Below, piece by piece: positions 3,583-34,692 of a stretch of 64,000 nucleotides of DNA. The notes under the pieces are model-generated. The model did not search any database, was not told the origin of the DNA, and saw only the letters and a list, made by a program, of their open reading frames with translations. A program made the translations under genes and the position numbers. Every line of letters starts with the position of its first letter. The stretch's first letter is position 1. The stretch is from sequence record NC_031039.1; one strand, written 5' to 3'.

Positions 3583-5268
3583 ATGTATTTCAAGAAGAAA
3601 AGTGGTAAAAAGAAAGATATAGAAGTTGTTGAACTCCCTATTAATATAGAGATGTTTGATTCTATTATTCAATATACATTATCTGATAATCCATTAATTA
3701 CTAAGAAATCTCTTATCAATTTAAGAAAATTAATTAATTTTATTGATATCAGATCCTATAGTGAAGATTTTTCAAGAATGTTAAGAATAGAATTACTTAA
3801 GAAGATTTTAGAAGGGGAATTGGATCAAAATATTTATAGAGATGCACTTCTTAAAGAATATTGCATAAAAGAATTACCTCATTACTCAAAGGATTTACTT
3901 GAATTATTTGAGTCTGGTTATTTTGATGAACCTCTATCTAATGATGATATTACGTTTATTAATAAATTTGTAGAAGAAAATTTAACGTATATCCATCTAA
4001 GAAGACATTCACCTGACTTAGAAATGGCTTTACAGCAATTAAGAGCTAGTGATTCTAGTAATCTTCGGTCGATTAATAATACATTAGAGAGAATTGTTGG
4101 GGAATTAAATAAAGATATTAAATCTGCCAAGGCTGTTAATCAATATGCCGCAATGGATTTTAATATTAATGGAAATACTGCCGATTCAGTAGTAAGAGCA
4201 ACTATTGAAGAATATAAGAAACCAAATAACCATTTGAAATTAGGTATTAAAAATTTTAATAAGATGCTTGATGGTGGAGTTGAGAATGGTCGAGTTTATT
4301 TAATCTTTGGTCTGCCTAAAGGATTTAAGTCCGGGACTTTATTAAACATCGCAATATGGATTTGTAAATATAATAGAGAGATTGTTACAAAAGATAAAAC
4401 TAAAAAACCATGTGTTTTATATGTAACACAAGAAAATAGTATTCGAGAAACTCTTCAAAGAATATTTGTTCATAGCACTGGTAGTAATATTGAGAACTAT
4501 ACTGAAGAAGAAGCTCTACGAATTATTAGAGAAGAAGTGATCGGTGTAGACGAAAATGGTGAAGCACCTATTGATCTCTTTATTAAATACCGTCCTAATA
4601 AATCAATTAGTACTTCTGATTTAGATACTATGTGTGATGATTTAGAATTAGAAGGATATGAAGTAGTTTGTCTTATTCAAGATTATACTAAGCGTATTAG
4701 ATCATCAAGCTATAATCCTTCTGATCTTAGACTTGAACTCGGTTCGGTGGTTGATGATTTTACCGTTATTGCTAAGACTAGAAATATTCCTGTTATTTCA
4801 GCTGGACAATTGAATAGGGAAGCATATCGTATACTAGAAACTTCATTAGAAAAAGGTAAAAGTAATATTGGTAAGAATCTGAATGCATCACATATTGGGG
4901 AATCTGCTTTAATGCAGGAAAATACTGATTATGGCGTAATTGTTAATAAAGAGGAATTTGAAGGCGTTGAGTACCTTACATTTAAATTGATAGCATCTCG
5001 TGCTAAGAAACCATCAATAACTTATTTTGCACATCCATTTGAAAAAGGTAATGGATTACGATTAATGGATGATATTCATTTAGCAAAATCATTATCAGAA
5101 GATAAAATTGGTGGAGATAAATTTAAAGAGTTTAATCCTAATAAGGCAAGGGAAAATAAGGGATCATTCTTTAATAATAACAATAGTAATCAACCAGAAT
5201 TTCCTCCAGTAGATTTAAAAGTTGAAGCAAATAATGGTATTGAAAAAGATAGTGGAATTCCATTCTAA
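3583..5268 (+). CDS. dnaB: DnaB-like replicative helicase, jumbo-phage type
   Basis: GG..GRVYLIFGLPKGFKS (atypical Walker A), YVTQEN, LIQDY (Walker B), ISAGQLNR, IGES motifs. Confidence 0.85.
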   Translation: MYFKKKSGKKKDIEVVELPINIEMFDSIIQYTLSDNPLITKKSLINLRKLINFIDIRSYSEDFSRMLRIELLKKILEGELDQNIYRDALLKEYCIKELPHYSKDLLELFESGYFDEPLSNDDITFINKFVEENLTYIHLRRHSPDLEMALQQLRASDSSNLRSINNTLERIVGELNKDIKSAKAVNQYAAMDFNINGNTADSVVRATIEEYKKPNNHLKLGIKNFNKMLDGGVENGRVYLIFGLPKGFKSGTLLNIAIWICKYNREIVTKDKTKKPCVLYVTQENSIRETLQRIFVHSTGSNIENYTEEEALRIIREEVIGVDENGEAPIDLFIKYRPNKSISTSDLDTMCDDLELEGYEVVCLIQDYTKRIRSSSYNPSDLRLELGSVVDDFTVIAKTRNIPVISAGQLNREAYRILETSLEKGKSNIGKNLNASHIGESALMQENTDYGVIVNKEEFEGVEYLTFKLIASRAKKPSITYFAHPFEKGNGLRLMDDIHLAKSLSEDKIGGDKFKEFNPNKARENKGSFFNNNNSNQPEFPPVDLKVEANNGIEKDSGIPF

Positions 5269-5278
5269 AGGAGAAAAT

Positions 5279-5521
5279 ATGTCACTACTGCCTAAAATAT
5301 TTCTTAAAATATCTATTCTTATACCTCTTTTAACTTCATCAATAGTAAGTACTGAAACTGTGTTAACTAAGTATTTTCCCAATTTGAGTATTAATACTCA
5401 AATTGGGATATTTATAATTAACGTTATATTATCTATGACTGTAAATATTTTAATATTAGAAGAATATGTTAAAAGAAGATTACAGGAGGAAATTAAAAAT
5501 GAATCAGAGAAAAAGAGATAA
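5279..5521 (+). CDS. Small membrane protein
   Basis: Two hydrophobic stretches; SD AAGGAG before ATG 5279. Confidence 0.6.
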   Translation: MSLLPKIFLKISILIPLLTSSIVSTETVLTKYFPNLSINTQIGIFIINVILSMTVNILILEEYVKRRLQEEIKNESEKKR

Positions 5522-20918: not shown

Positions 20919-21863
20919 ATGGGTAAAAAGATTAATAAAGAAATATTAGAAGAAATAATTAAAGAAAATCCTGATTGGACACAAAAACAAATAGCTGATC
21001 ATCTAAATTTATCTATATCTTATATTGGGCAGTTAATAAAAAAATATAATATTGATTATAAAGATAAAAATATAAATTACACCATAAAAGAAGAATTAAA
21101 AAAAATTATAAATGAACATCCCGATTGGTCGCAAAGAGAAATAGCTGAACACTTAGGGACAGAAAAATCCCATGTGAGTCAATTAATTAAAAAGTATAAT
21201 ATTGATTACACTATAAAAAAGAAGAATAAAAAAATAATTATTTCAAAAGAAAAATTAATTGAAATCATTAATGAACACCCTGATTGGACACAAAAACAAA
21301 TAGCTGATCATTTAGGAGTTGTAGAATCCTATATCAGTAGGCTAATAAGAAAGTATAATATAATATATGTTAAAAAAGGAAATCAAAGCAGGAATAAATT
21401 TATGGAAAAAAATTTAATTTCACAATATTTTATGAATGAAGAAATTATGGTAGATTTATTATTTTCAGTAATTAAGAATAATAATGAATTAAATCAAAAA
21501 GAAATAGCTGATCTATTAGTAAAAAGATTAATTAATGAATATAATCTAAATTATAAATTAAAAACTATAACTAAAGATGATTTATTGGATGTAATTAAAG
21601 AACATCCTGACTGGACACAAAAACAAATAGCTGATCATTTCCTAGCTCTTCCAAATACAATTAATTCTATACTAGTAAGAAATAACATCAATCAAAAAGA
21701 AATTAGAGAAGAATATATGGTTGAAAAATTAAAAGAATTAATTAAAGAGCATCCTGATTGGACTCAAGCTCAATTAGCTGAACCATTAGGAATTACAAAA
21801 ACATATGTAAGGAATTTAATTATTAAATATAAATTAGAATATAATAAGAAGAAATTAAAATAA
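20919..21863 (+). CDS. Tandem-HTH repeat protein (six repeats)
   Basis: Repeat I.EHPDWTQKQIADHL..S.I..LIKKYNI.Y; 33-bp DNA unit at 20970, 21279, 21606. Confidence 0.85.
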   Translation: MGKKINKEILEEIIKENPDWTQKQIADHLNLSISYIGQLIKKYNIDYKDKNINYTIKEELKKIINEHPDWSQREIAEHLGTEKSHVSQLIKKYNIDYTIKKKNKKIIISKEKLIEIINEHPDWTQKQIADHLGVVESYISRLIRKYNIIYVKKGNQSRNKFMEKNLISQYFMNEEIMVDLLFSVIKNNNELNQKEIADLLVKRLINEYNLNYKLKTITKDDLLDVIKEHPDWTQKQIADHFLALPNTINSILVRNNINQKEIREEYMVEKLKELIKEHPDWTQAQLAEPLGITKTYVRNLIIKYKLEYNKKKLK

Positions 21864-21868
21864 CTTTA

Positions 21869-21881
21869 AAGTTTATATTAT
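21869..21881 (+). promoter_or_regulatory. Early-type promoter AAGTTTATATTAT
   Basis: Motif variant upstream of AAA+ gene. Confidence 0.6.
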
Positions 21882-21907
21882 AAAAATGTAATAAACTAGA
21901 TAAATAA

Positions 21908-23137
21908 TTGGGAATAGAAATGGAGAGAGAAATTATTATGAAAATGTCAAATTTAATCAAAGCAATCGATATTACAGTTCAATCAGGTTCAGTACCTATG
22001 GTTATGGGTCACAGTGGTATTGGAAAATCAAGTATTGCAAAAATCTATGCAGACTTAATTCAAGAAAGAGAAAATAAAGATGTAGTATATGTTGAGTTAT
22101 TTGGTTCTGTTCTTAAAGAAGGTGAATTAACTGGTATGCCAATTAATATCACTAAAAACTATAGTGGAGAAGAATTAAATGTAACAACATATACTATTCA
22201 TACTGCAATTAGAAAACTATGGGAAGCAAATGAGGCAGGTAAAATCCCACTATTATTCTTAGATGAATTAAACCGTTCTGATATTGCAGTACAACAAGAG
22301 TTAATGCAATTAATTCTTACGAAGCAAATTAATGGAAATCCATTACCAGAAAATACTATTATGATTGCGGCAGGGAATCCAGATTCTGAAGATGATGATG
22401 GAATTGACTATCAAGTAAATACTATGAACTATGCTTTAAGAGATCGTTTTACTGATCTTCATTTAGAAGTAGACTCTGACGAATGGATTAAATGGGCGTT
22501 GCAACAAGTATCATTTTATGATAACGATGACAATCTAATTAAAACAGATTCTATGATCCACAAGAATATTATTGAGTTTATCACAAATGATCCTCTTCAG
22601 TTACATATCATTAATGCTGAAAATGAAGGTAAAAATCCAACTCCTCGTGCTTGGGAAAGAACTTCTGATGCGTATAGATATTTTGAAGAGAATTATGATA
22701 TGGAAGACAGTGATAATAAGAGAGCTTTCTGGGGAGTAGTAGAAGGAAACCTTGGGAAAAATACCGCTATTGCATTTAGAAGCTTTATTGAAGAAAATTC
22801 TAAACCAATGATTAATCCTAAGACTATTATTAATAATAAAGATTTATCTAAAGATACAAAGCTAATCGAAAAAATTAAAAATGAAACTATGGCAAGACAA
22901 AATCTATTAACTCGCTATGTATATATTCATATTGGTAATAATATCGATAAATTTAAAGAAAAAGAGTTAAATAACTTTATTACTTATCTTGATATTATTC
23001 CTGAAGAATTGTTAATGATGGCGATTAGCGAGATTAAGAGAAATCCTAATGATAACATTAGTTCTATTTTTGAAATTTTAAAAACTAATCAAACTTTTAT
23101 TCAAAAGTTTGTTAATATCATTCAAAATTTAAAATAA
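21908..23137 (+). CDS. MoxR-like AAA+ ATPase
   Basis: GHSGIGKS Walker A, LFLDELNRS Walker B, AAGNP, ALRDRF, TPRAWE. Confidence 0.9.
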   Translation: MGIEMEREIIMKMSNLIKAIDITVQSGSVPMVMGHSGIGKSSIAKIYADLIQERENKDVVYVELFGSVLKEGELTGMPINITKNYSGEELNVTTYTIHTAIRKLWEANEAGKIPLLFLDELNRSDIAVQQELMQLILTKQINGNPLPENTIMIAAGNPDSEDDDGIDYQVNTMNYALRDRFTDLHLEVDSDEWIKWALQQVSFYDNDDNLIKTDSMIHKNIIEFITNDPLQLHIINAENEGKNPTPRAWERTSDAYRYFEENYDMEDSDNKRAFWGVVEGNLGKNTAIAFRSFIEENSKPMINPKTIINNKDLSKDTKLIEKIKNETMARQNLLTRYVYIHIGNNIDKFKEKELNNFITYLDIIPEELLMMAISEIKRNPNDNISSIFEILKTNQTFIQKFVNIIQNLK

Positions 23138-23161
23138 TAGATATAAAAAGGGGAAGTAAAA

Positions 23162-24586
23162 ATGACTATTCTTAATAGTGATAATAAAAATGAAATTTAT
23201 GAGTATCTAAAATCAATATATATTAAAGCAGATGCTCCTTCAGTTCAAGTCTCAGAAAATAATCAAAAGTTAATAGAGAGATATTTCTCTCTATTAACTA
23301 CTTCCCTGATCTTAAATGATCGGGATGGAGATAGTAGATTCTATGCTTATTTTTTGTCTTCTGTTAAAAGAACTATTATTCACGATCAGTATTTTGCTCC
23401 TGCCGCAGTATATTATGATGATAATAGAATGACATTTGTGTTATTATTAAATCCATATAAATTATTCTTATTTGAACAAGATGAGATCGTTGCTGTACTA
23501 ATGCATGAATTGCTTCATGTTGCAAATAGCCATATCTATAGACACAAAGTTTTATCTACTAGATATAATAAACTTGATATGCAAAAAGTTAATATTGCAA
23601 TGGATTGTGCAATTAATCAATTTATTAAAAATTTACCTAATGGTACAATTACACTTAAATCAGTTAGAGAAATGACTGGAATAAAGAATATTAGATCTAA
23701 AGCAAATTTTGAATATTATTTAGAATTATTATTAAAAAGTAAAAAAGTTAATAAAAATAATAAATCTAATGGTCAAAGTTCAAAAAATTCAGAAGACCCT
23801 AATGAATTAAACGATAATGATGTTGATTCTGATGGAAATCTAACTGAAAGTGGTAAAGAAAAAAGATTATCACAATCAAGAAATCATGCTCATGATAAAT
23901 GGGATGAAATTGAATCTAGTAAAACAGTAGAGAAAGAGATGTCAGAGAAATTAAAAGATATTCTTCAAGATATTAAAAATAGAAATAGAGGTAATCTTCC
24001 TAATAATATGGAAGGTATCTTACAATCATTATTAGGTAAACAAGAAATCGCATGGCAAAAAATATTTAAAAATATGATCGGTGGATTAAAGGTTCCATTT
24101 AAAAGAACTCCCATGCGTAGAAGTAGAAGACAACCTGATAGACCTGATGTACTGGGAAGGATCTCGGACAGAGAATGTAAAGTTGCAGTTGCTTTGGATA
24201 TGTCAGGATCAATGACAAATGAAGAATTAGCATGGTCACTTAATGAAGTAATTGGTTTATTAAAAGGGAAGAAATCAACTGTTACTATCATTCATTTTGA
24301 TTCAGAGGTTGGAACTGTCTATGATGTTAGAAAAAAGAATGACATTAAATTTAAAAGGGATAAGCAAGGTGGTACAGAATTTTCTCCTGTAATAAAATAT
24401 GTAAATAAAAATTTACCTAAAACAGATGTTTTAGTAGTCTTTACTGACGGTTATGGTGAATATGAATTAGAGGAAAAACCAAATTGTCAAATGTTGTGGA
24501 TTATCACAAGAGGAAATGAATTATCTGTTCGAAAGCCATATGGTAAGATAAGATACAATAATTATAAGGAGGAAAAAGATGAATAA
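23162..24586 (+). CDS. DUF2201-type metallopeptidase + VWA-domain protein
   Basis: MHELLHV..H, NIAMDCAIN, ALDMSGSM (MIDAS), QGGTEF, VFTDGYG. Confidence 0.9.
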   Translation: MTILNSDNKNEIYEYLKSIYIKADAPSVQVSENNQKLIERYFSLLTTSLILNDRDGDSRFYAYFLSSVKRTIIHDQYFAPAAVYYDDNRMTFVLLLNPYKLFLFEQDEIVAVLMHELLHVANSHIYRHKVLSTRYNKLDMQKVNIAMDCAINQFIKNLPNGTITLKSVREMTGIKNIRSKANFEYYLELLLKSKKVNKNNKSNGQSSKNSEDPNELNDNDVDSDGNLTESGKEKRLSQSRNHAHDKWDEIESSKTVEKEMSEKLKDILQDIKNRNRGNLPNNMEGILQSLLGKQEIAWQKIFKNMIGGLKVPFKRTPMRRSRRQPDRPDVLGRISDRECKVAVALDMSGSMTNEELAWSLNEVIGLLKGKKSTVTIIHFDSEVGTVYDVRKKNDIKFKRDKQGGTEFSPVIKYVNKNLPKTDVLVVFTDGYGEYELEEKPNCQMLWIITRGNELSVRKPYGKIRYNNYKEEKDE

Positions 24587-25259
24587 TTGGTTGCATACTA
24601 GAACGATAAGTGATGATGATACTATCATCACTTATCCTTTCATTTGTATTAGTGATCCTTATAGTGGTTTCGGTAATTCTAGAGAGCTTGAAAATATGTT
24701 TGACCTTTTCAGAGAATTTCTAAAGAGAAAAGGATATGTACTTAAATTTGATGAAGGATATAGTAAAGAATCAATTTCTAAATATTTTGAATTCCGATTA
24801 GAAGACTTTAAAGAAAGATTACCTAAAATTATTGATAGTCTTAAAGGAAGATATTTAATTTTTGAGGAGTTTGGATATTATAGAGAAAACAAGGGGAATT
24901 TTCGTTTAGCATATCTTTTATCAGAATATAAAAATATACATAAAGATTTTTTCAATATTTTAATTCCCACTACCATTTCCCTTAGAAATGATTCAGATAT
25001 TAATAAATTTATTAATAATTTTTTAAGTAAATTTAAGGAATCATTATTTAAGGCTATTCTATATATGATTGAATATTTTGAAAGTAATAATCTGTTGAAT
25101 TACTTAGAATCAATAGAGAAATACATTCTGATTAACGGTTTAAGACAATATGTTGATTATGATAAATATGCATATTTATATGAAAATGATCCTAAATTTA
25201 AAAATAGTTTAGAAAGAGTAAGAAAATATGAAGCTATGAATATATTAAATGAATTATAG
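24579..25259 (+). CDS. Paralog family A member 1 (unknown function)
   Basis: Shares C-terminal KFKESLFKAILYMIEYFE...FKNSLERVRKYEAMNILNEL with downstream genes; start overlaps VWA stop. Confidence 0.8.
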   Translation: MNNWLHTRTISDDDTIITYPFICISDPYSGFGNSRELENMFDLFREFLKRKGYVLKFDEGYSKESISKYFEFRLEDFKERLPKIIDSLKGRYLIFEEFGYYRENKGNFRLAYLLSEYKNIHKDFFNILIPTTISLRNDSDINKFINNFLSKFKESLFKAILYMIEYFESNNLLNYLESIEKYILINGLRQYVDYDKYAYLYENDPKFKNSLERVRKYEAMNILNEL

Positions 25260-25271
25260 GAGGTTATTATA

Positions 25272-26423
25272 TTGAGCATTATTGAATCTCTAAAGGAATT
25301 ATTATTAGACGTTGATGAAGATAATAATATAATTATAATGGAGGACAATGATCTGGTCAGCAATGAATATATAATTAGTATGCTAAATGATATAAATAAA
25401 GAAAGAAAATTTCTTTTTGTAGAAAATGATATAGTATATTTTGATGCATCATTTATAATATTTAATGTTTGGTCTTATAAGAAGAATCAAGCAATTAATA
25501 GCTATTTTCATTTTAGTCATACTGAATTTGCCAACTATGTTATTAGTAGTATTATTAAAAAATTAATAGACAGCGATCACATAACTTTAGATATCATTTC
25601 AGATAAATTAAATCAAATGACCTTATTAAAATCAGGATTAAGAGTATATCCAGATGATGAAGACTATTCAATGTTAAAAACTATTAATAGTGTTGGATAT
25701 GAGTTAGCAAGTTATATTTACGATCATGAATTTATTAAGAGATCTCTTGATAAGTCACCTATAGATGATGTTTATAGATCAGCTGATCAATCAGTATTTA
25801 GTAAACCCACAATACATGAATCTAAGTTAAATTTAACTAGACCAGATTTAGATATTCTCTATTTTCCTTTAATTAAGGATTTTAAGACAAACTCAGTATC
25901 TATAACTTTAATGCAAGATTATAAGTTATTATTTAATGATCTAAAATTAAAAAAAGAAGAATTAATTAATGAATACTTTAAAGATATTCTAGAAGACACT
26001 AAAAAGAGATTAACGGTTGTTAAAGAACAAAGGGTATATAAGCATGAATTAAATTCAAATTATATTCATTTAATTCAATTAGTTAGAGGTAAAGTTACTA
26101 AAACTAGAAAAAATAAAATAAATAAACAATTATCAACTTCTAGAGCAAGATTCTTTGGGAAAAAAGAGAATTATTTTGAGGGAAAATTTAGGGAAACAAT
26201 TTTTAAAATAATACTCTTTATGATTGAATATTTTGAAAAAGAAAATTTGGAGAAACAATTAGAATCAATTGAAAAAGCATTTTCTTTAAAAATATTTAAG
26301 AATTATATTGGTTATTATGAATATGATGATATTCGAATAAGTTATTTGAATGATGATAAATTTGCTAAAAGCAGAGAAAGAATATCTAGATATGAAGCAG
26401 AAGAACTCTTAGAACAACTTTAA
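25272..26423 (+). CDS. Paralog family A member 2
   Basis: RPDLDILYFPLIKDF...KFRETIFKIILFMIEYFE...RISRYEAEELLEQL; TTG start. Confidence 0.8.
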   Translation: MSIIESLKELLLDVDEDNNIIIMEDNDLVSNEYIISMLNDINKERKFLFVENDIVYFDASFIIFNVWSYKKNQAINSYFHFSHTEFANYVISSIIKKLIDSDHITLDIISDKLNQMTLLKSGLRVYPDDEDYSMLKTINSVGYELASYIYDHEFIKRSLDKSPIDDVYRSADQSVFSKPTIHESKLNLTRPDLDILYFPLIKDFKTNSVSITLMQDYKLLFNDLKLKKEELINEYFKDILEDTKKRLTVVKEQRVYKHELNSNYIHLIQLVRGKVTKTRKNKINKQLSTSRARFFGKKENYFEGKFRETIFKIILFMIEYFEKENLEKQLESIEKAFSLKIFKNYIGYYEYDDIRISYLNDDKFAKSRERISRYEAEELLEQL

Positions 26424-26424
26424 T

Positions 26425-26460
26425 TTAGAATGATATCCTTTTTATAGGATATCATTCTAA
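26425..26460. terminator. Hairpin between convergent genes
   Basis: 15-bp stem TTAGAATGATATCCT/AGGATATCATTCTAA. Confidence 0.8.
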
Positions 26461-26467
26461 TAATTTT

Positions 26468-26914
26468 TTATACTGCGTCTTCATCAATAACTACTTCTCT
26501 GTCAGTCTTAGTTACTTTTTGTAATATCCAAGTAGGAAAAGTAAGTTCATGAATACCAGTGAAAGTTTGTCTATGATGTTTTAAACATAATACAATTAAA
26601 TTTCTAATATCATCTACAGTTGTAATAGGTACTTCATTTAATTTTTTTCCATATCCGTAAATATCAAACAACTCTACGAGTTCTTTTAATTTATCATAGT
26701 CACAGACATTTTGCATAGACCAACTACATAGGAAATGATGAACTTCTAAATGTTCAGTGTTTTCACATATCCAACACTTATAATGACCATCTTCTTTTAA
26801 TCTTTTTTTAGATTTTCTAAACGTAGATGATTCTTTTCTTTCTTCATGTTCAGGAATTAAAACACTTTCTTTTAATGTAGTTCTATCAATATGTTCTGCG
26901 ATTATTTTACTCAT
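26468..26914 (-). CDS. HNH-like zinc-binding protein
   Basis: CWIC..EHLEVHH...NLIVLCLKHH..GIH. Confidence 0.7.
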   Translation of the reverse strand: MSKIIAEHIDRTTLKESVLIPEHEERKESSTFRKSKKRLKEDGHYKCWICENTEHLEVHHFLCSWSMQNVCDYDKLKELVELFDIYGYGKKLNEVPITTVDDIRNLIVLCLKHHRQTFTGIHELTFPTWILQKVTKTDREVVIDEDAV

Positions 26915-26934
26915 ATTACCACCCCTTCTAGCTA

Positions 26935-26946
26935 TATTATTATGTT
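26935..26946 (-). promoter_or_regulatory. Late-type promoter AACA-taataa-TA
   Basis: Motif match upstream of HNH gene. Confidence 0.55.
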
Positions 26947-26959
26947 TAAAAAAATTTAA

Positions 26960-26972
26960 AAATATATATTAT
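26960..26972 (+). promoter_or_regulatory. Early-type promoter AAATATATATTAT
   Basis: Exact consensus upstream of 27020. Confidence 0.75.
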
Positions 26973-27019
26973 ACTTTTGATACTAAATAATTTGAGAAAT
27001 AATATTAGGAGGACTATTT

Positions 27020-27190
27020 ATGACAGATACTCAAAAACTAATTGAATTAGGTTTTGACTTTGATTCACAAGGAATATTTATTTTTGATGAATCTAAAGAG
27101 GTCAAAGATATAATTAATAGTAATGAGTTTTCTAGAAGTATGAAGAAAATTAAAGAATATGAGGCAATTAATATAATGGAATCATTATAA
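27020..27190 (+). CDS. Paralog family A mini-member (56 aa), not in ORF track
   Basis: AGGAGG SD; MTDTQKLIELGFDF...FSRSMKKIKEYEAINIMESL carries the family C-terminal tail. Confidence 0.8.
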   Translation: MTDTQKLIELGFDFDSQGIFIFDESKEVKDIINSNEFSRSMKKIKEYEAINIMESL

Positions 27191-27206
27191 ATATGGAGGA
27201 TGAGAA

Positions 27207-28436
27207 ATGGATATAAAAAAAGAATTAGAAAAATTAGGAATTGTATTAAAAAAGGATGAAACTTCTTCAAAAAATAGTTATAATTTATATATGACTAAGG
27301 ATGCAGAAGAAAAACTTATCCCATATCATGAAAGACTTATTATAGAGAGATTAAATACTCCTTTTACCCTTTATCAAACTGATTCAGGGCAACATATATT
27401 TAAGCTACACTTATTTAAGTTAATTGATAATAAAATAATAATAGATATTGAAAAATTATCTATACAAACAGAATATTCTAACTTAGAATATATGGAGATT
27501 CTTATATTTCTCTCTGTAACAGAAAAATTATTAGACTATAATTTTCCTTTGTCATTTGGTAATAATTTATTTCGTAATTATATCTTAAACTCATATTGCA
27601 TGAGTGAGAATCTAATTGAAGAAAATTTAGATAATATCATTAAGTATCAAAGTAATGATTTACTTAATGATAATGATGACGCAACACTAGAATACTATAT
27701 TGACATGCGTGTATCTATAATTAGATCTAAAGTTGTTAGAAGATGTTATAACCTAGATTATTGTACTAAGAATAGATTTATTTCAAATCCAGTTTATAGA
27801 TATTTTAATGATATAAATAATGAAAAAATAAATTTATATCGTCCTGATTTAAATCTTTTTTATGTTCCATTCACTAATGTTAACTTTGGAAATTCTAATA
27901 TTTCAGGTTTATTATTAGATTATATTATTTTAAATAAGGATCAAAAATTTGAATCTAAAGATAAGATTGATAAGTATTTTGATGAGTTAGTAAATGATTT
28001 TTTAAAAAGATTAGAATCAGATCCATCAAAATTATTTGAAAATTTGTCAACTCGTAGTCGTGGTCCATATTATAATATAGCATTTAGTCTTACTTATGAA
28101 GCTAATTTTATTAAAACAAAATTAAATTTTTCTCCCTCTAATCAACATCCTTTAAACAAAAAAAGAAATAAAAAAGGCGTTTATGGTATTGATTATTTTG
28201 ATAGTAAAATGAGGGAATCTTTATTTAAAGTTATTACAATCTTAATAAAACATTTTGAAACTTTAAATCAAAACTCATTTTTAGAGAAAATGGAAAAGAC
28301 ATTAGCTACTAATGAAATACAAAATTATATTGGTTATAATGTTTATCCAGAATTATATTTTAATAATCCACAATTCAAGGATAGCTTAAAAAGAGTTAAA
28401 CAATATGAAGCATTAAGTATATTAGATACTATTTGA
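27207..28436 (+). CDS. Paralog family A member 4
   Basis: RPDLNLFYVPF...KMRESLFKVITILIKHFE...FKDSLKRVKQYEALSILDTI. Confidence 0.8.
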   Translation: MDIKKELEKLGIVLKKDETSSKNSYNLYMTKDAEEKLIPYHERLIIERLNTPFTLYQTDSGQHIFKLHLFKLIDNKIIIDIEKLSIQTEYSNLEYMEILIFLSVTEKLLDYNFPLSFGNNLFRNYILNSYCMSENLIEENLDNIIKYQSNDLLNDNDDATLEYYIDMRVSIIRSKVVRRCYNLDYCTKNRFISNPVYRYFNDINNEKINLYRPDLNLFYVPFTNVNFGNSNISGLLLDYIILNKDQKFESKDKIDKYFDELVNDFLKRLESDPSKLFENLSTRSRGPYYNIAFSLTYEANFIKTKLNFSPSNQHPLNKKRNKKGVYGIDYFDSKMRESLFKVITILIKHFETLNQNSFLEKMEKTLATNEIQNYIGYNVYPELYFNNPQFKDSLKRVKQYEALSILDTI

Positions 28437-29680
28437 GGGGGATAAATATGATTAAAATTGAAGAAAGATTAAAACAGTATAAAATTAATATTAGAAATAA
28501 TCAACTTTATTTGAGTGAAGATAGTGCTAAATATATTTTAGATAGAAAATTATTGGATTATTATAATTATATATTAAATGAATCTAATAAAAGTGAATAT
28601 TTATTTAAATATAGTCTTACTGCCCGTGGAATAAGAATTGATAATGATAATAAAATAATTGTTGAACCTAATCTCATGGTATATCAGAAACACTGGGGAT
28701 GGACAAATCCACCTGAAATTAATACAATAATTAAAGTACTCATTATAAGTGAATTAATAAATAAATTGATGGATGAAGGTTATGAAGTATTTTTAGGTAA
28801 TAATACATCAAAGGAAAGAAATCTTGAATTATTTAGGTGGATGCAAAGTCAATATAATAAAATGCACAAATTATCTGGTATTGATAATTCTTTAAATGCT
28901 AGAGAAGTATTTAAAGACATATCTGAGTATTTACATATTTCAACTAGAATGCTAAGTGATAGAATTCTCAGGAATAGTTATACTAAGGAATATGTAATTA
29001 ATGCGAGACCCTCTAAGGCTTTTAGACCACCATATACATTATTCAATATCTGCTTTCATGATTTGGAACTAGATTCTAAATTGAATAGATTAGATCTTGA
29101 TTTATACTATATACCTTTTATTAAAGATATTGTTAATAATCAATTTGGTATTGCATTAATGAAAGACTATGTTCTTTTAAATAATGATAGCGATCTTGAA
29201 AATTTTGATAAAATAGATAAATATTTTGATGAATTATTACAAGATGCAGAAACAAGATTACCGATAATATCTAATATTGAAATTAAAACTAAATCTACAG
29301 CAAGTGTATATTTTCAGCTAATTGATATTAAAGATATAAGACAAGTTACAATTATTAAAAGAATAAAATCAAAATATAAAGTAACTTCTAGGAACAAACA
29401 TCCATTATCAAAATATAAAACCTTAAAAGGTTCTCAATATTTTAGTGCAAAATTGAGAGAATCACAATTTAAAGCACTATTATTAATGATAAAATACTTT
29501 GAAGAACATTGTAATAAAAATGATTTAGCTAGAGCAGAAAAAATATTATCACTTAAAGAAGTTCAAAATTATCTTGGCTATGAACACTATAAGCATTTAT
29601 ATGAAGATAATCCAAAATTTAAAAATAGTTTTAAAAGAGTAAAAGATTTAGAAGCTATTGAATTATTAGAGAATCTATAA
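28433..29680 (+). CDS. Paralog family A member 5
   Basis: RLDLDLYYIPFIKD...KLRESQFKALLLMIKYFE...FKNSFKRVKDLEAIELLENL; start may be ATG 28448. Confidence 0.8.
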   Translation: MRGINMIKIEERLKQYKINIRNNQLYLSEDSAKYILDRKLLDYYNYILNESNKSEYLFKYSLTARGIRIDNDNKIIVEPNLMVYQKHWGWTNPPEINTIIKVLIISELINKLMDEGYEVFLGNNTSKERNLELFRWMQSQYNKMHKLSGIDNSLNAREVFKDISEYLHISTRMLSDRILRNSYTKEYVINARPSKAFRPPYTLFNICFHDLELDSKLNRLDLDLYYIPFIKDIVNNQFGIALMKDYVLLNNDSDLENFDKIDKYFDELLQDAETRLPIISNIEIKTKSTASVYFQLIDIKDIRQVTIIKRIKSKYKVTSRNKHPLSKYKTLKGSQYFSAKLRESQFKALLLMIKYFEEHCNKNDLARAEKILSLKEVQNYLGYEHYKHLYEDNPKFKNSFKRVKDLEAIELLENL

Positions 29681-29694
29681 TTGGGGGATTTAAA

Positions 29695-30840
29695 ATGCCT
29701 GAATTTAATTTAATGGAAAATGTAATTGAAGTAATAGAGGTTCCAAGTGGTAGTAAATCTGGTTTATTCCCAAGAAAGAGAGAATCTGGTTTTGATAAAA
29801 TATTAAGGCAAGAAATTGTACCAGCTCAAAAGAATCATCTTGATACAATTATAAAACGAATGAAAGCAATAGGCTATGATAAAATTGCTGTACTTAACAC
29901 AAATATTCAATTTTATTGGGAGATAACTACAGTCGAATATCCTTTTAATAATGATAATCAGCTACATATAACATTAGTCAATAAAGAAAATACTATTGAA
30001 TATTTAAGTTTAGTAAATCTTAAATCTGGATTTTTCTCAGATAGAAAATTTAATAACCTAACAAAGAGACTCCAAGATTCAGGAGAAGATATTGGAAAGA
30101 TTATGAGAGCATATATAGAATATAATTTACCATATTACTTTTCAAGAAATTATGAGAAATATGAAAAGGAGAATGAAGAAATGAAAAAAGAAAATAATGA
30201 AGTTAACGATAAAATTAATAATAAAGAGGTAAATATTCTACTAGCCCCATTGGTAAAAGATTTCTTAGGAACAATTGGTAGTATTGCAATATTAAGAAAT
30301 TTTAGTGAGTATTATGAAGACAAGTATATTGAGGATAAAAATAAAGTTGATAAGTATTTTAATGAATTAATTGATGATGTAAAAACGTTATTAAAAACTA
30401 AAAATGATATCACATTAATTGATCCTAATCCAAAAAATAATAAGTATATTAATCTTGTTAAAATTATGAAAGGAGAAGAATTAGTATTTAAGAATATTAA
30501 AAGAAGCCTATCAATTAATAGAAATAGTAAACATCCTTTATTAAGAAGTGAGTTTGAACCACTCCATTCAGAGTATTTTGAAGGAAAATACAGAGAGTAT
30601 ATTTTTAGAACAATGCTTGTATTAATTGAATTCTTTGAGAATAGTTTCAAGGAAAATCCAATGGCAACTAAACATTCTGAATTTCTTAACAATATTGAAA
30701 AAGCTTTATCTAAAGACGAAATAAAAGAATATGTTGGTTATGATTTGTTTAAATCTGATTATGAGAATAATCCTATCTTTGAAGAAAGCTTAAAGCGTGT
30801 TAAAGAACATTCAGCTGTTGATATATTAGAATCCCTATAA
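29695..30840 (+). CDS. Paralog family A member 6
   Basis: ILLAPLVKDF...KYREYIFRTMLVLIEFFE...FEESLKRVKEHSAVDILESL. Confidence 0.8.
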   Translation: MPEFNLMENVIEVIEVPSGSKSGLFPRKRESGFDKILRQEIVPAQKNHLDTIIKRMKAIGYDKIAVLNTNIQFYWEITTVEYPFNNDNQLHITLVNKENTIEYLSLVNLKSGFFSDRKFNNLTKRLQDSGEDIGKIMRAYIEYNLPYYFSRNYEKYEKENEEMKKENNEVNDKINNKEVNILLAPLVKDFLGTIGSIAILRNFSEYYEDKYIEDKNKVDKYFNELIDDVKTLLKTKNDITLIDPNPKNNKYINLVKIMKGEELVFKNIKRSLSINRNSKHPLLRSEFEPLHSEYFEGKYREYIFRTMLVLIEFFENSFKENPMATKHSEFLNNIEKALSKDEIKEYVGYDLFKSDYENNPIFEESLKRVKEHSAVDILESL

Positions 30841-32881: not shown

Positions 32882-33793
32882 GTGATTATTATGCTAATGA
32901 CAAAATCTTTTAAAAATATACACCTAATTAAATGGGATATCTACACAGTTCTTAAAACACATGATAAAATATTAGATATACTATCGAATAGAGTAAATTA
33001 TCAGAAATTACACATTGAAACAATTTATACTGAATCTGGAATCCAAGTAGTACAAAAATTAACTAATGATACATATAATATATCCAAAAACAGTCTCCCT
33101 CTTTTATCTGATAGAGAAGCCAAGTTTAGTAAAGATGCAATGGATATGATAGTAAATAATTTTATGAATAGTTATAATTTAAAAACTCAAGATGAATATA
33201 ATAAATATAAAGAAATGCTTTTAAATAATGGGAATAATGAAGTTACAGTTGTTATAGATGCATCTAATATCGTGTTACAGACAAATCATATTTCTGATGA
33301 AGAAATAGATCGTGCTAAGAAACATCTAATTTCTAATCATGATTTTTATGAATCTAAAAAATTATGTGATGTGTGTGGTAAAAGATCTAATAATGTATCT
33401 GAAAGAAATGAATTTGGTAGATTTAAGATTCATTATTTCTGTGATGATCATAGAGTTAAGGAATTATATAAGAATAAAAGTATAATAAATAACCAAATTA
33501 TATCATATAATGGAAAAAATAAAATTAATCTTGGAGCTAAACCTACCTGTGATGTATGTAAAGGAAGTTTATTCACCTCTATATACACTGATCAATTTTA
33601 TTTATTATATGATGATACAAAAGTATGCAATAATTGTGTTTATAGTTATATAGGAAGAAATTTATTAAATCAACATGGACATAGATGTGAAAACTGTCGT
33701 GGACAAGGATATATTAGAGATTACAAACTCTATAAAGTAGATTGTGCTTATTGTCAAGGAACAGGTTGGATTAAGAAGGAGAATAGTAAATGA
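32882..33793 (+). CDS. Paralog family B member 1, multi-zinc-finger with DnaJ-type CxxCxGxG pair
   Basis: IHLIKWD N-terminus; CDVC..CDDH; CENCRGQG..CAYCQGTGW. Confidence 0.75.
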   Translation: MIIMLMTKSFKNIHLIKWDIYTVLKTHDKILDILSNRVNYQKLHIETIYTESGIQVVQKLTNDTYNISKNSLPLLSDREAKFSKDAMDMIVNNFMNSYNLKTQDEYNKYKEMLLNNGNNEVTVVIDASNIVLQTNHISDEEIDRAKKHLISNHDFYESKKLCDVCGKRSNNVSERNEFGRFKIHYFCDDHRVKELYKNKSIINNQIISYNGKNKINLGAKPTCDVCKGSLFTSIYTDQFYLLYDDTKVCNNCVYSYIGRNLLNQHGHRCENCRGQGYIRDYKLYKVDCAYCQGTGWIKKENSK

Positions 33794-34692
33794 GGGATCT
33801 ACATTTAATTAAATGGTCATTAGCAGGAATGATTAGATTTGAGGATTCATGTCTTCCTCAATTTGATAAAACTTATGAAATTATTTTTACTGATGGTTAT
33901 GTAGAATTAGTTTATAAACGAAAAAATAATTTTATTACATTTAAAGTACCTATTGGAATTAAATATGGGAAACCTTATCTTTCTAATGAATTAAAAAAAG
34001 AAATACAAGAAAGAACTATTACTTATTATTATAAATATGTTAATTGTCTAAAAAGAGATGAATATTTAGATTATAGGAATAAATATCTACAAAATAAAAA
34101 TAACAAAGTAGCTATTTTAAGAGATTCTAAAAAGTTAAAAGTATATGCTAATTACGAAATATCTGAGAAAGAGTTTCTAAATATTAGAAGGGAAAGAGTG
34201 AAGGTTGAGGATTTTCTCAAAGAGAATATATGTGAAGTTTGTGGTTCAAGAAACTCATTAACTAGATTCAATAGACACAATTTATGCACTAAACACTCAA
34301 TACAAGTTGAATTTAAAGAATATCATAGTTTAGAAGATTTAATTAGGGAAAATAATAAATTAAAATGCCATTGCTGTAATGAAGATATTTTAAAAACTGA
34401 TCTTTATATGAAACAAGATAAAGAAGCGAAAGAAAATATCGCATCACCAATATTCACAATATTTCATAATACGGATCCACTGGATAAAGATTTACACTAT
34501 TGTGATCAATGTAAAAGAAAGTTTAATGATAAAATAGTTGAAAATATTGTTAAACGATCAGAAATATGTAAATGTAAAGAATGTAATGGAAAAGGTTACG
34601 AAAGAAATTATTATGTAGAAAAAGAATTCTGTGAAAAATGTAATGGTAGAGGATGGGTTAAGAAGAAGGGAGTAAATAATGAAGTACAATAA
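33790..34692 (+). CDS. Paralog family B member 2, multi-zinc-finger
   Basis: LHLIKWS; CEVC..CTKH; CKECNGKG..CEKCNGRGW. Confidence 0.75.
   Translation: MRDLHLIKWSLAGMIRFEDSCLPQFDKTYEIIFTDGYVELVYKRKNNFITFKVPIGIKYGKPYLSNELKKEIQERTITYYYKYVNCLKRDEYLDYRNKYLQNKNNKVAILRDSKKLKVYANYEISEKEFLNIRRERVKVEDFLKENICEVCGSRNSLTRFNRHNLCTKHSIQVEFKEYHSLEDLIRENNKLKCHCCNEDILKTDLYMKQDKEAKENIASPIFTIFHNTDPLDKDLHYCDQCKRKFNDKIVENIVKRSEICKCKECNGKGYERNYYVEKEFCEKCNGRGWVKKKGVNNEVQ

Follow-up and report, generated by a model that had tools for sequence, protein, structure and literature searches.

A tandem early-gene family with a common C-terminal domain beside an ATPase/zincin-vWA gene pair in Bacillus phage AR9

Why does a jumbo phage of Bacillus subtilis keep a row of related early genes with one common C-terminal end directly behind the genes for an AAA+ ATPase and a zincin-like metallopeptidase fused to a vWA domain, and do the row and the pair work together? 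We addressed this question for genes g028–g036 of Bacillus phage AR9 (KU878088.1), a member of Takahashivirus PBS1, the uracil-DNA jumbo phages of B. subtilis. The window, that is the whole stretch of DNA that was analysed, corresponds to bases 1–64000 of the AR9 record with 100% identity and unchanged coordinates, and its G+C content is about 26% throughout. In the annotation g032 is named “HNH nuclease” and the other genes of the locus are hypothetical.

The original prediction saw an early promoter, the ATPase and HExxH-vWA genes and an array of six related genes, and proposed that the tail common to these six is a docking or targeting tag that carries variable cargo domains. We find that the array is a new accessory early-gene family and that the pair beside it is already described. 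That this family joins variable N-modules to a shared helical C-domain and acts on the host is the reading we prefer, and we give it about even chances.

The C-terminal domain and its tail

In multiple alignments a C-terminal core of about 200 amino acids is shared by g030, g031, g034, g035 and g036, and the tail that closes it is shared by all six genes, g033 included. Pairwise BLAST comparisons of the C-domains gave E-values from 1e-13 to 1e-40. The array is made up of the following genes:

24579..25259 (+): g030, the C-domain alone, 226 amino acids (alignments; core hidden Markov model (HMM), E 3e-68)
25272..26423 (+): g031, 383 amino acids, N-terminal part at about 1–185 and core at 186–383 (alignments, BLAST, core HMM; phrog_13583)
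27020..27190 (+): g033, a 56-amino-acid remnant that has kept the extreme N-terminus and the tail (Goe21 counterpart; tail HMM, E 6e-17)
27207..28436 (+): g034, 409 amino acids (alignments, BLAST, core HMM)
28448..29680 (+): g035, 410 amino acids, annotated from the ATG at 28448; the open reading frame (ORF) can also open at a TTG at 28433 (alignments, core HMM, AlphaFold2 (AF2) model)
29695..30840 (+): g036, 381 amino acids, with an SPO1-gp41-like N-domain at about residues 3–140 (29695–30114), a low-complexity linker rich in acidic residues and lysine, and the core at 30208–30840 (Pfam PF25749, tblastn, core HMM, E 1e-78)

Six related genes had been predicted, and the tail is indeed common to six and the core to five, but the gene at 27020 is a deletion remnant and not an independent form. 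The counterpart of g033 in phage Goe21 (about 96% DNA identity) is an intact gene for 445 amino acids, both ends of which match the 56 residues of g033, as one gene with an in-frame deletion would. By this comparison g033 is what one internal in-frame deletion has left of a full-length member, rather than a tail-only gene. The annotation of PBS1 holds the same 56-amino-acid form. The ratio of nonsynonymous to synonymous substitution rates (dN/dS) between AR9 and Goe21 orthologues lies between 0.13 and 0.35, which marks them as working genes; to judge from these substitutions, the members are under purifying selection.

When the complete AR9 genome, with its 3902 stop-to-stop ORFs, was searched with a tail HMM built from the last 48 residues of 14 members, the six genes alone were matched (E ≤ 2.5e-16), the next best ORF having an E-value of 0.26. 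Every occurrence of the tail closes either a core or one of its deletion remnants. In the alignment of the five paralogs, 18 of the 25 invariant columns fall in the last 79 residues (g030 numbering) and five of these 18 in the last 20, so that conservation is not higher in the tail than in the helices preceding it. In this alignment a conserved C-terminal subdomain spans about 80 amino acids, and the tail closes it without being a separately conserved element.

The AF2 models were weak overall, with a mean predicted local distance difference test score (pLDDT) of 53 for g035 and 61 for g030. The g030 model (predicted template modelling score 0.64) is all-helical, with no strands, and three short strands were predicted in the core region of g035, both models being of low confidence there. 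Both contain a confident helical C-terminal subdomain (the last ~90 residues), of which the tail forms the last helix with a pLDDT of about 90 (91–93 in g035; 95, 90 and 79 in g030). A basic loop of low pLDDT, which is not conserved in all members, lies between the two conserved halves of the core. Column statistics for the last 22 residues show that a hydrophobic stripe is conserved in the AR9 group as well as in phage BpSp, and that the polar serine and arginine positions are near-invariant in the AR9 group only and not conserved in BpSp. Being confined to the core and its remnants, no better conserved than its neighbours, modelled with confidence as a helix of the bundle and reduced in BpSp to its hydrophobic stripe, the tail does not behave as the portable docking or targeting tag that had been proposed. 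Alignments and models together favour a terminal packing or oligomerisation helix.

Across 13 members no column is invariant and a single one is nearly so, which argues against a catalytic domain. Foldseek searches with both AF2 models gave no PDB match with E < 1 and, in BFVD, only the family itself. Pfam, NCBIfam (in which g030, g035 and g036 were scanned) and PADLOC offered no credible family for the core, which PHROGs places in three families of unknown function. An AbiEii nucleotidyltransferase toxin was considered and rejected: PADLOC matches g030 alone, weakly (E 3.2e-4, 18.5 bits) and over the C-terminal portion of the model, the other four members have none, Pfam gives none either, and the match is probably due to chance.

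N-terminal parts, distribution and early expression

The N-terminal parts were predicted to be highly divergent, and they are: BLAST and HMM similarity among them is marginal. One of them has a clear homologue elsewhere. Residues 3–140 of g036 match the Pfam family PF25749 (SPO1_gp41) with an E-value of 4.1e-77 and 257.5 bits (cutoff 27), and tblastn aligned g036 with SPO1 gp41 at 37.6% identity (E 5e-19, 84% of the query); homologues in other Okubovirus phages align too. Both are early genes of B. subtilis phages; SPO1 gp41 differs in that it is a stand-alone protein of 154 amino acids, without the AR9 C-domain or tail. SPO1 gp41 belongs to the host-takeover module of its phage, and expressed alone it cuts the growth of B. 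subtilis by at least 50% (PMC6873191).

The idea that all N-terminal parts are gp41-like was rejected, as hhalign probabilities were at most 0.9% for all ten other N-parts. In leave-one-out HMM comparisons of the other N-parts with one another, z-scores were mostly 2–3, two reached 5.6–6.3 and two were negative; the gp41-like control scored 1.9. The full-length family profile aligns end to end with gp079 of BpSp, and g030 has no N-terminal part at all. By these comparisons the architecture is genuinely modular for g036 and g030, and the remaining members may be modular or simply very divergent. The predicted variable cargo domains are accordingly seen in two genes, g030 with the C-domain only and g036 with gp41-like domain, linker and C-domain, but the rest may differ by divergence alone.

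In order to place the family, several collections were searched. A profile of five AR9 members found ten proteins among 1.84 billion representative proteins, all from the records of AR9, PBS1, Goe21, Internexus and BpSp or close variants, and of 50,697 phage records searched by tblastn eight matched, each of them Takahashivirus. Pattern scans returned only AR9 from IMG/VR and nothing from JGI metagenomes or GTDB genomes, and word-indexed protein searches returned close orthologues only, AT-rich low-complexity words having saturated the candidate list. Across these searches the C-domain family is an ORFan restricted to Takahashivirus. Two genes downstream of the pair in LY01, a Staphylococcus jumbo phage, have C-termini that look vaguely alike by eye; they were rejected as distant members, BLAST, HMM and hhalign having found nothing (probabilities ≤ 0.5%). 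The members are distributed as follows:

AR9: five full members and one remnant
Goe21: nine full members, no remnants
PBS1: five full members and three tail-only remnants
Internexus: five full members and one remnant, plus a 65-amino-acid ORF at the head of the array that the core model does not match
BpSp (B. pumilus; vWA protein 43.7% identical): five full members, gp088–gp091 located 3′ of the pair after three unrelated genes and gp079 located 5′ of the ATPase gene

The array thus turns over between close relatives, copy number varying from 5 to 9 among phages that are about 96% identical in DNA. Four members (g031, g034, g035 and g036) are represented in each of the four AR9-group genomes. 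The BpSp gene gp079 (1374–2576 of its excerpt) is a full-length member (hhalign 98%, E 1.9e-13); tblastn had not picked it up, whereas HMM and hhalign did, and its tail is without the F..S..R motif. In PBS1, genes 216 and 217 (5021–5369 of the excerpt) are short ORFs that match the end of the family core and are apparent leftovers of members. Internexus 208 (4204–4401 of the excerpt) is another apparent leftover, as suggested by its position alone.

The array is transcribed in two early operons, and the signals and the gene that separate them are:

21869..21881 (+): early (virion RNA polymerase) promoter of operon g028–g031 (KU878088.1 annotation; primary transcription start site (TSS) at 21888, PMC5312081 supplement)
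26425..26460 (no strand assigned): terminator-like hairpin with a 15-bp stem and a T-run, closing operon g028–g031 between the convergent g031 and g032 (sequence)
26468..26914 (−): g032, HNH nuclease, a non-member that splits the array (annotation; weak Pfam HNH_2)
26960..26972 (+): early promoter of operon g033–g038 (annotation; TSS at 26979)

The AR9 transcriptome study, in which the primary starts of g028 and g033 were mapped at 21888 and 26979, names g033–g038 as an early operon, and its read densities at three time points show that the genes of the array and of the pair are on from the first sample (PMC5312081). The virion-protein annotation is on none of these genes. With all of them early and none annotated as a virion protein, the locus fits host-directed effectors; together with the gp41 homology of g036, this is consistent with the suggestion that cargo of the host-takeover type is present.

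The transcript of g032 increases late (14, 40 and 215 at the three time points). This gene occupies the same site in PBS1, Internexus and Goe21, and it is therefore not linked to the deletion in g033. At 24605–24636 (+), within the first 20 codons of g030 and just past the g029 stop, a perfect inverted repeat of 14 bp precedes a T-rich stretch. The transcript density of g030 is 3–6 times below that of g029, and the repeat could be a partial attenuator.

The ATPase/zincin-vWA pair beside the array

The two genes that head the first operon are:

21938..23137 (+): g028, AAA+ ATPase of the AAA_5 (MoxR/dynein-related) type, 399 amino acids (Pfam AAA_5, phrog_1297)
23162..24586 (+): g029, zincin-like metallopeptidase (HExxH) fused to a vWA domain, 474 amino acids (Pfam, phrog_1314)

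Their order behind an early promoter is as predicted, on the evidence of the annotated promoter, the mapped start, Pfam and the motifs. So is the overlap of the vWA stop with the start of the first paralog: with the last base of g029 at 24586 and the first of g030 at 24579, the two genes share 8 nt.

g028 matches Pfam AAA_5 with an E-value of 4.7e-7 and 30.3 bits (cutoff 22) over profile positions 4–139 of 139, and phrog_1297 (“ATPase”) over its full length (E 1e-76). The P-loop (Walker A) and the Walker B acidic pair can be read in its translation. A phmmer search of PDB sequences, solved MoxR, RavA and CbbQ proteins included, gave no match at E ≤ 0.01, and the narrower label MoxR, as opposed to AAA_5 in general, is taken from Pfam and Iyer et al. 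Between AR9 and Goe21, g028 has 10 synonymous and 0 nonsynonymous differences. g029, which starts 25 nt downstream of the g028 stop, matches DUF2201_N (E 4.9e-15, 56.3 bits, cutoff 23.2) and DUF2201 (E 1.5e-17, 64.3 bits, cutoff 26.4) in that order, as well as VWA_2 and phrog_1314 (E 7e-84). The HExxH motif and an intact DxSxS metal ion-dependent adhesion site (MIDAS) motif are readable in the translation, the vWA domain forms the C-terminal end (Pfam stretch 341–463 of 474), and sequence search found no solved relative. As both proteins match phage-wide PHROG profiles end to end, neither has a lineage-specific extra domain.

The pair itself is widespread. Homologues of the vWA protein were found in 281 phage records, among them N4-like, rV5-like, Asteriusvirus, Staphylococcus jumbo and Vibrio phages. 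In BpSp, LY01 and an rV5-like phage the ATPase gene lies directly 5′ of the vWA gene; the N4-like phage Ka4 has one small gene between the two, and the annotation of Vibrio phage phiKT1024 shows no ATPase next to the vWA gene. The genes 3′ of the pair vary, being replication genes in N4-like phage and small ORFs in rV5-like phage. In the rV5-like Escherichia phage EduardKellenberger three consecutive genes of 264 bp (3975–4764 of its excerpt) directly follow the pair, and this trio may be another small tandem family beside it.

MoxR/zincin-vWA pairs of jumbo phages were described by Iyer et al. 2021 (PMC7824862). In their “group 2.2” pair, as in AR9, the gene after that of the AAA_5 ATPase encodes a vWA protein that starts with a zincin domain, the AR9 genes falling into the phage-wide families phrog_1297 and phrog_1314. 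The authors proposed a role in virion assembly and processing, whereas the AR9 pair is expressed early from a promoter of the virion RNA polymerase, which does not fit well with virion assembly. No paralog array beside the pair is described in that work.

Two further features of the neighbourhood were noted. Directly 5′ of the g028 early promoter, g027 (20919–21863, +, 314 amino acids) is made up of five or six helix-turn-helix repeats in tandem, in which the motif HPDW.Q..IA recurs, and it matches dozens of helix-turn-helix Pfam models. A few genes 3′ of the array, g041 and g042 (32891–34692, +) form a second tandem paralog pair of 303 and 300 amino acids, annotated “Zn finger protein of DnaJ family”; just 5′ of them, g039 and g040 have the highest transcription in the neighbourhood.

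Possible roles of the family

If the preferred reading is right, g030–g036 would be tandemly amplified accessory proteins of Takahashivirus only, early, non-virion and probably non-enzymatic. In the full members a fast-diverging N-module would set target specificity, one N-module being the gp41 homologue and one member going without; it would be joined to the conserved, mostly helical C-domain of about 200 amino acids, with the tail as its last amphipathic helix and a part of the fold. The C-domain would do the same for all members, most likely by self- or hetero-association or by binding one shared partner, and the N-modules would engage different host targets in takeover or counter-defence. 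The array would grow and shrink by recombination among paralogs, and such expansion and contraction would make individual members dispensable. The ATPase and the zincin-vWA protein would form a separate two-gene module, widespread in phages, that heads the same early operon by chance.

Several observations weigh against this. Every genome with the family has the pair at most about 3 kb away on the same strand, and in three AR9-group genomes out of four the array is headed by an ORF that overlaps the vWA stop, which fits translational coupling. The remnant g033 is the most abundant transcript of its operon (PMC5312081 data), and tail-only remnants persist as ORFs. Within the AR9 group the serine, arginine and glutamate residues of the tail hardly vary, and they could form a binding surface. 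The AF2 models, moreover, were built from five-sequence alignments and are of low overall confidence.

It seems doubtful to us that the tail or the whole C-domain is a docking element for the g028/g029 machine, which would remodel, activate or deliver the N-terminal cargo in a three-component phage system. Such docking would suit the single early operon g028–g031 with its 8-nt stop/start overlap, the absence of any family-bearing genome without the pair, the neighbourhood kept in BpSp despite the low identity of its vWA protein, the intact MIDAS and the conserved acidic and polar tail positions of the AR9 group; bacterial MoxR-vWA systems with a diversifying third component do exist (PMC7159879). 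The family-bearing genomes are, however, two lineages of one genus in which the whole gyrB-to-array region is syntenic, so that adjacency adds little. At the vWA stop, AR9 and Goe21 have a full member and Internexus has the same 8-nt overlap with its unmatched 65-amino-acid ORF, but in PBS1 the overlap is lost to a 100-nt gap, and BpSp has three unrelated genes there and one member 5′ of the ATPase gene. Searches of the AR9 genome and other phages with tail and core, as the original prediction had suggested, found the pair always near the family, but the converse fails, since 273 of the phage records with the vWA protein gave no match to the family. Neither g028 nor g029 has acquired an extra domain in this lineage, BpSp does not conserve the polar tail residues, and the second sub-array, g033–g036, is a separate operon. 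On these comparisons, coupling of the family to the pair is unproven. Somewhat more doubtful still is the wider proposal that the AR9 locus is a phage counterpart of the bacterial MoxR-vWA ternary conflict systems, whose machine would recognise the C-domain or tail and activate, process or deliver effectors against the host, remnants like g033 acting as competitors or regulators. The VMAP/iSTAND systems (Kaur et al. 2020, PMC7159879) likewise combine a MoxR-like ATPase, a vWA protein and a rapidly diversifying modular third component in one neighbourhood. Their gene order is VMAP-MoxR-vWA, whereas the AR9 array lies 3′ of the vWA gene and the one upstream member of BpSp is three genes away. 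VMAP-C is an alpha+beta domain with 7 strands and 6–7 helices, and the last ~90 residues in AR9 are predicted to be a helical bundle, a distinction drawn from the description and with the rest of the AR9 core modelled at low confidence. Effectors of VMAP systems are fused C-terminally to the vWA protein, whereas the N-terminal zincin is the only extra domain of g029, and these systems serve cellular defence, whereas the AR9 locus sits in a lytic phage.

Cleavage has also to be considered, since zincin systems with a conserved C-terminal peptide were linked to MoxR-vWA by Kaur et al. (PMC7159879). The paralogs would then be substrates of the g029 zincin, held by the vWA domain and powered by g028, and a cut at a conserved site in or before the C-domain would free an active N-module or a C-terminal peptide. 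In favour of this, g029 retains its HExxH motif, the two conserved halves of the core are separated by a basic low-pLDDT loop, and zincins beside MoxR-vWA genes cleave rapidly diverging precursors with a conserved C-terminal peptide (PMC7159879), much as the AR9 zincin gene lies beside variable proteins with a conserved C-terminal end. The precursors of these FxSxx-COOH systems are small, however, with the motif at the very C-terminus, whereas the AR9 proteins have 226–410 amino acids (up to 445, in Goe21) and their F..S motif lies about 17–20 residues before the end. No NCBIfam or Pfam match to FxSxx-COOH-type precursors was found, the loop is not conserved in all members, and the points of distribution raised against docking apply equally, which makes processing improbable in our view. 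We think it just as improbable that the family serves the early programme of the phage itself, for example as scaffolds of replication or transcription with the paralogs as sub-functionalised structural subunits. Early expression beside gyrase, DNA-binding and other replication-type genes would agree with this, and a helical, non-enzymatic C-domain would suit assembly; against it, core machinery would not usually vary from 5 to 9 copies among nearly identical phages, one N-module has a homologue in the host-takeover protein gp41 of the unrelated phage SPO1, and no homologues were found outside Takahashivirus, the other pair-carrying phages of the collection included. That the array is decaying duplicated DNA without function was already disfavoured and is very hard to credit: remnants and fragments do occur in AR9, PBS1 and Internexus, but the frames of the full members are open and transcribed, their dN/dS values are low, and four of them are kept in every AR9-group genome.

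As it stands, the locus is an ordinary lineage-specific paralog family beside a described gene pair. Jumbo phages have in their early genes a store of host-takeover and counter-defence functions, most of it still unread, and this locus is a compact natural experiment within it, in which one helical domain with no fold match is combined with several N-modules and copy number shifts among near-identical isolates. If the coupling to the ATPase/zincin-vWA pair were true, the array would be the first client set for a two-gene module of hundreds of phages. If the C-domain turns out to serve all members as a unit of assembly or targeting, this would account for the way in which the lineage diversifies its effectors and would give a handle on the target of SPO1 gp41.

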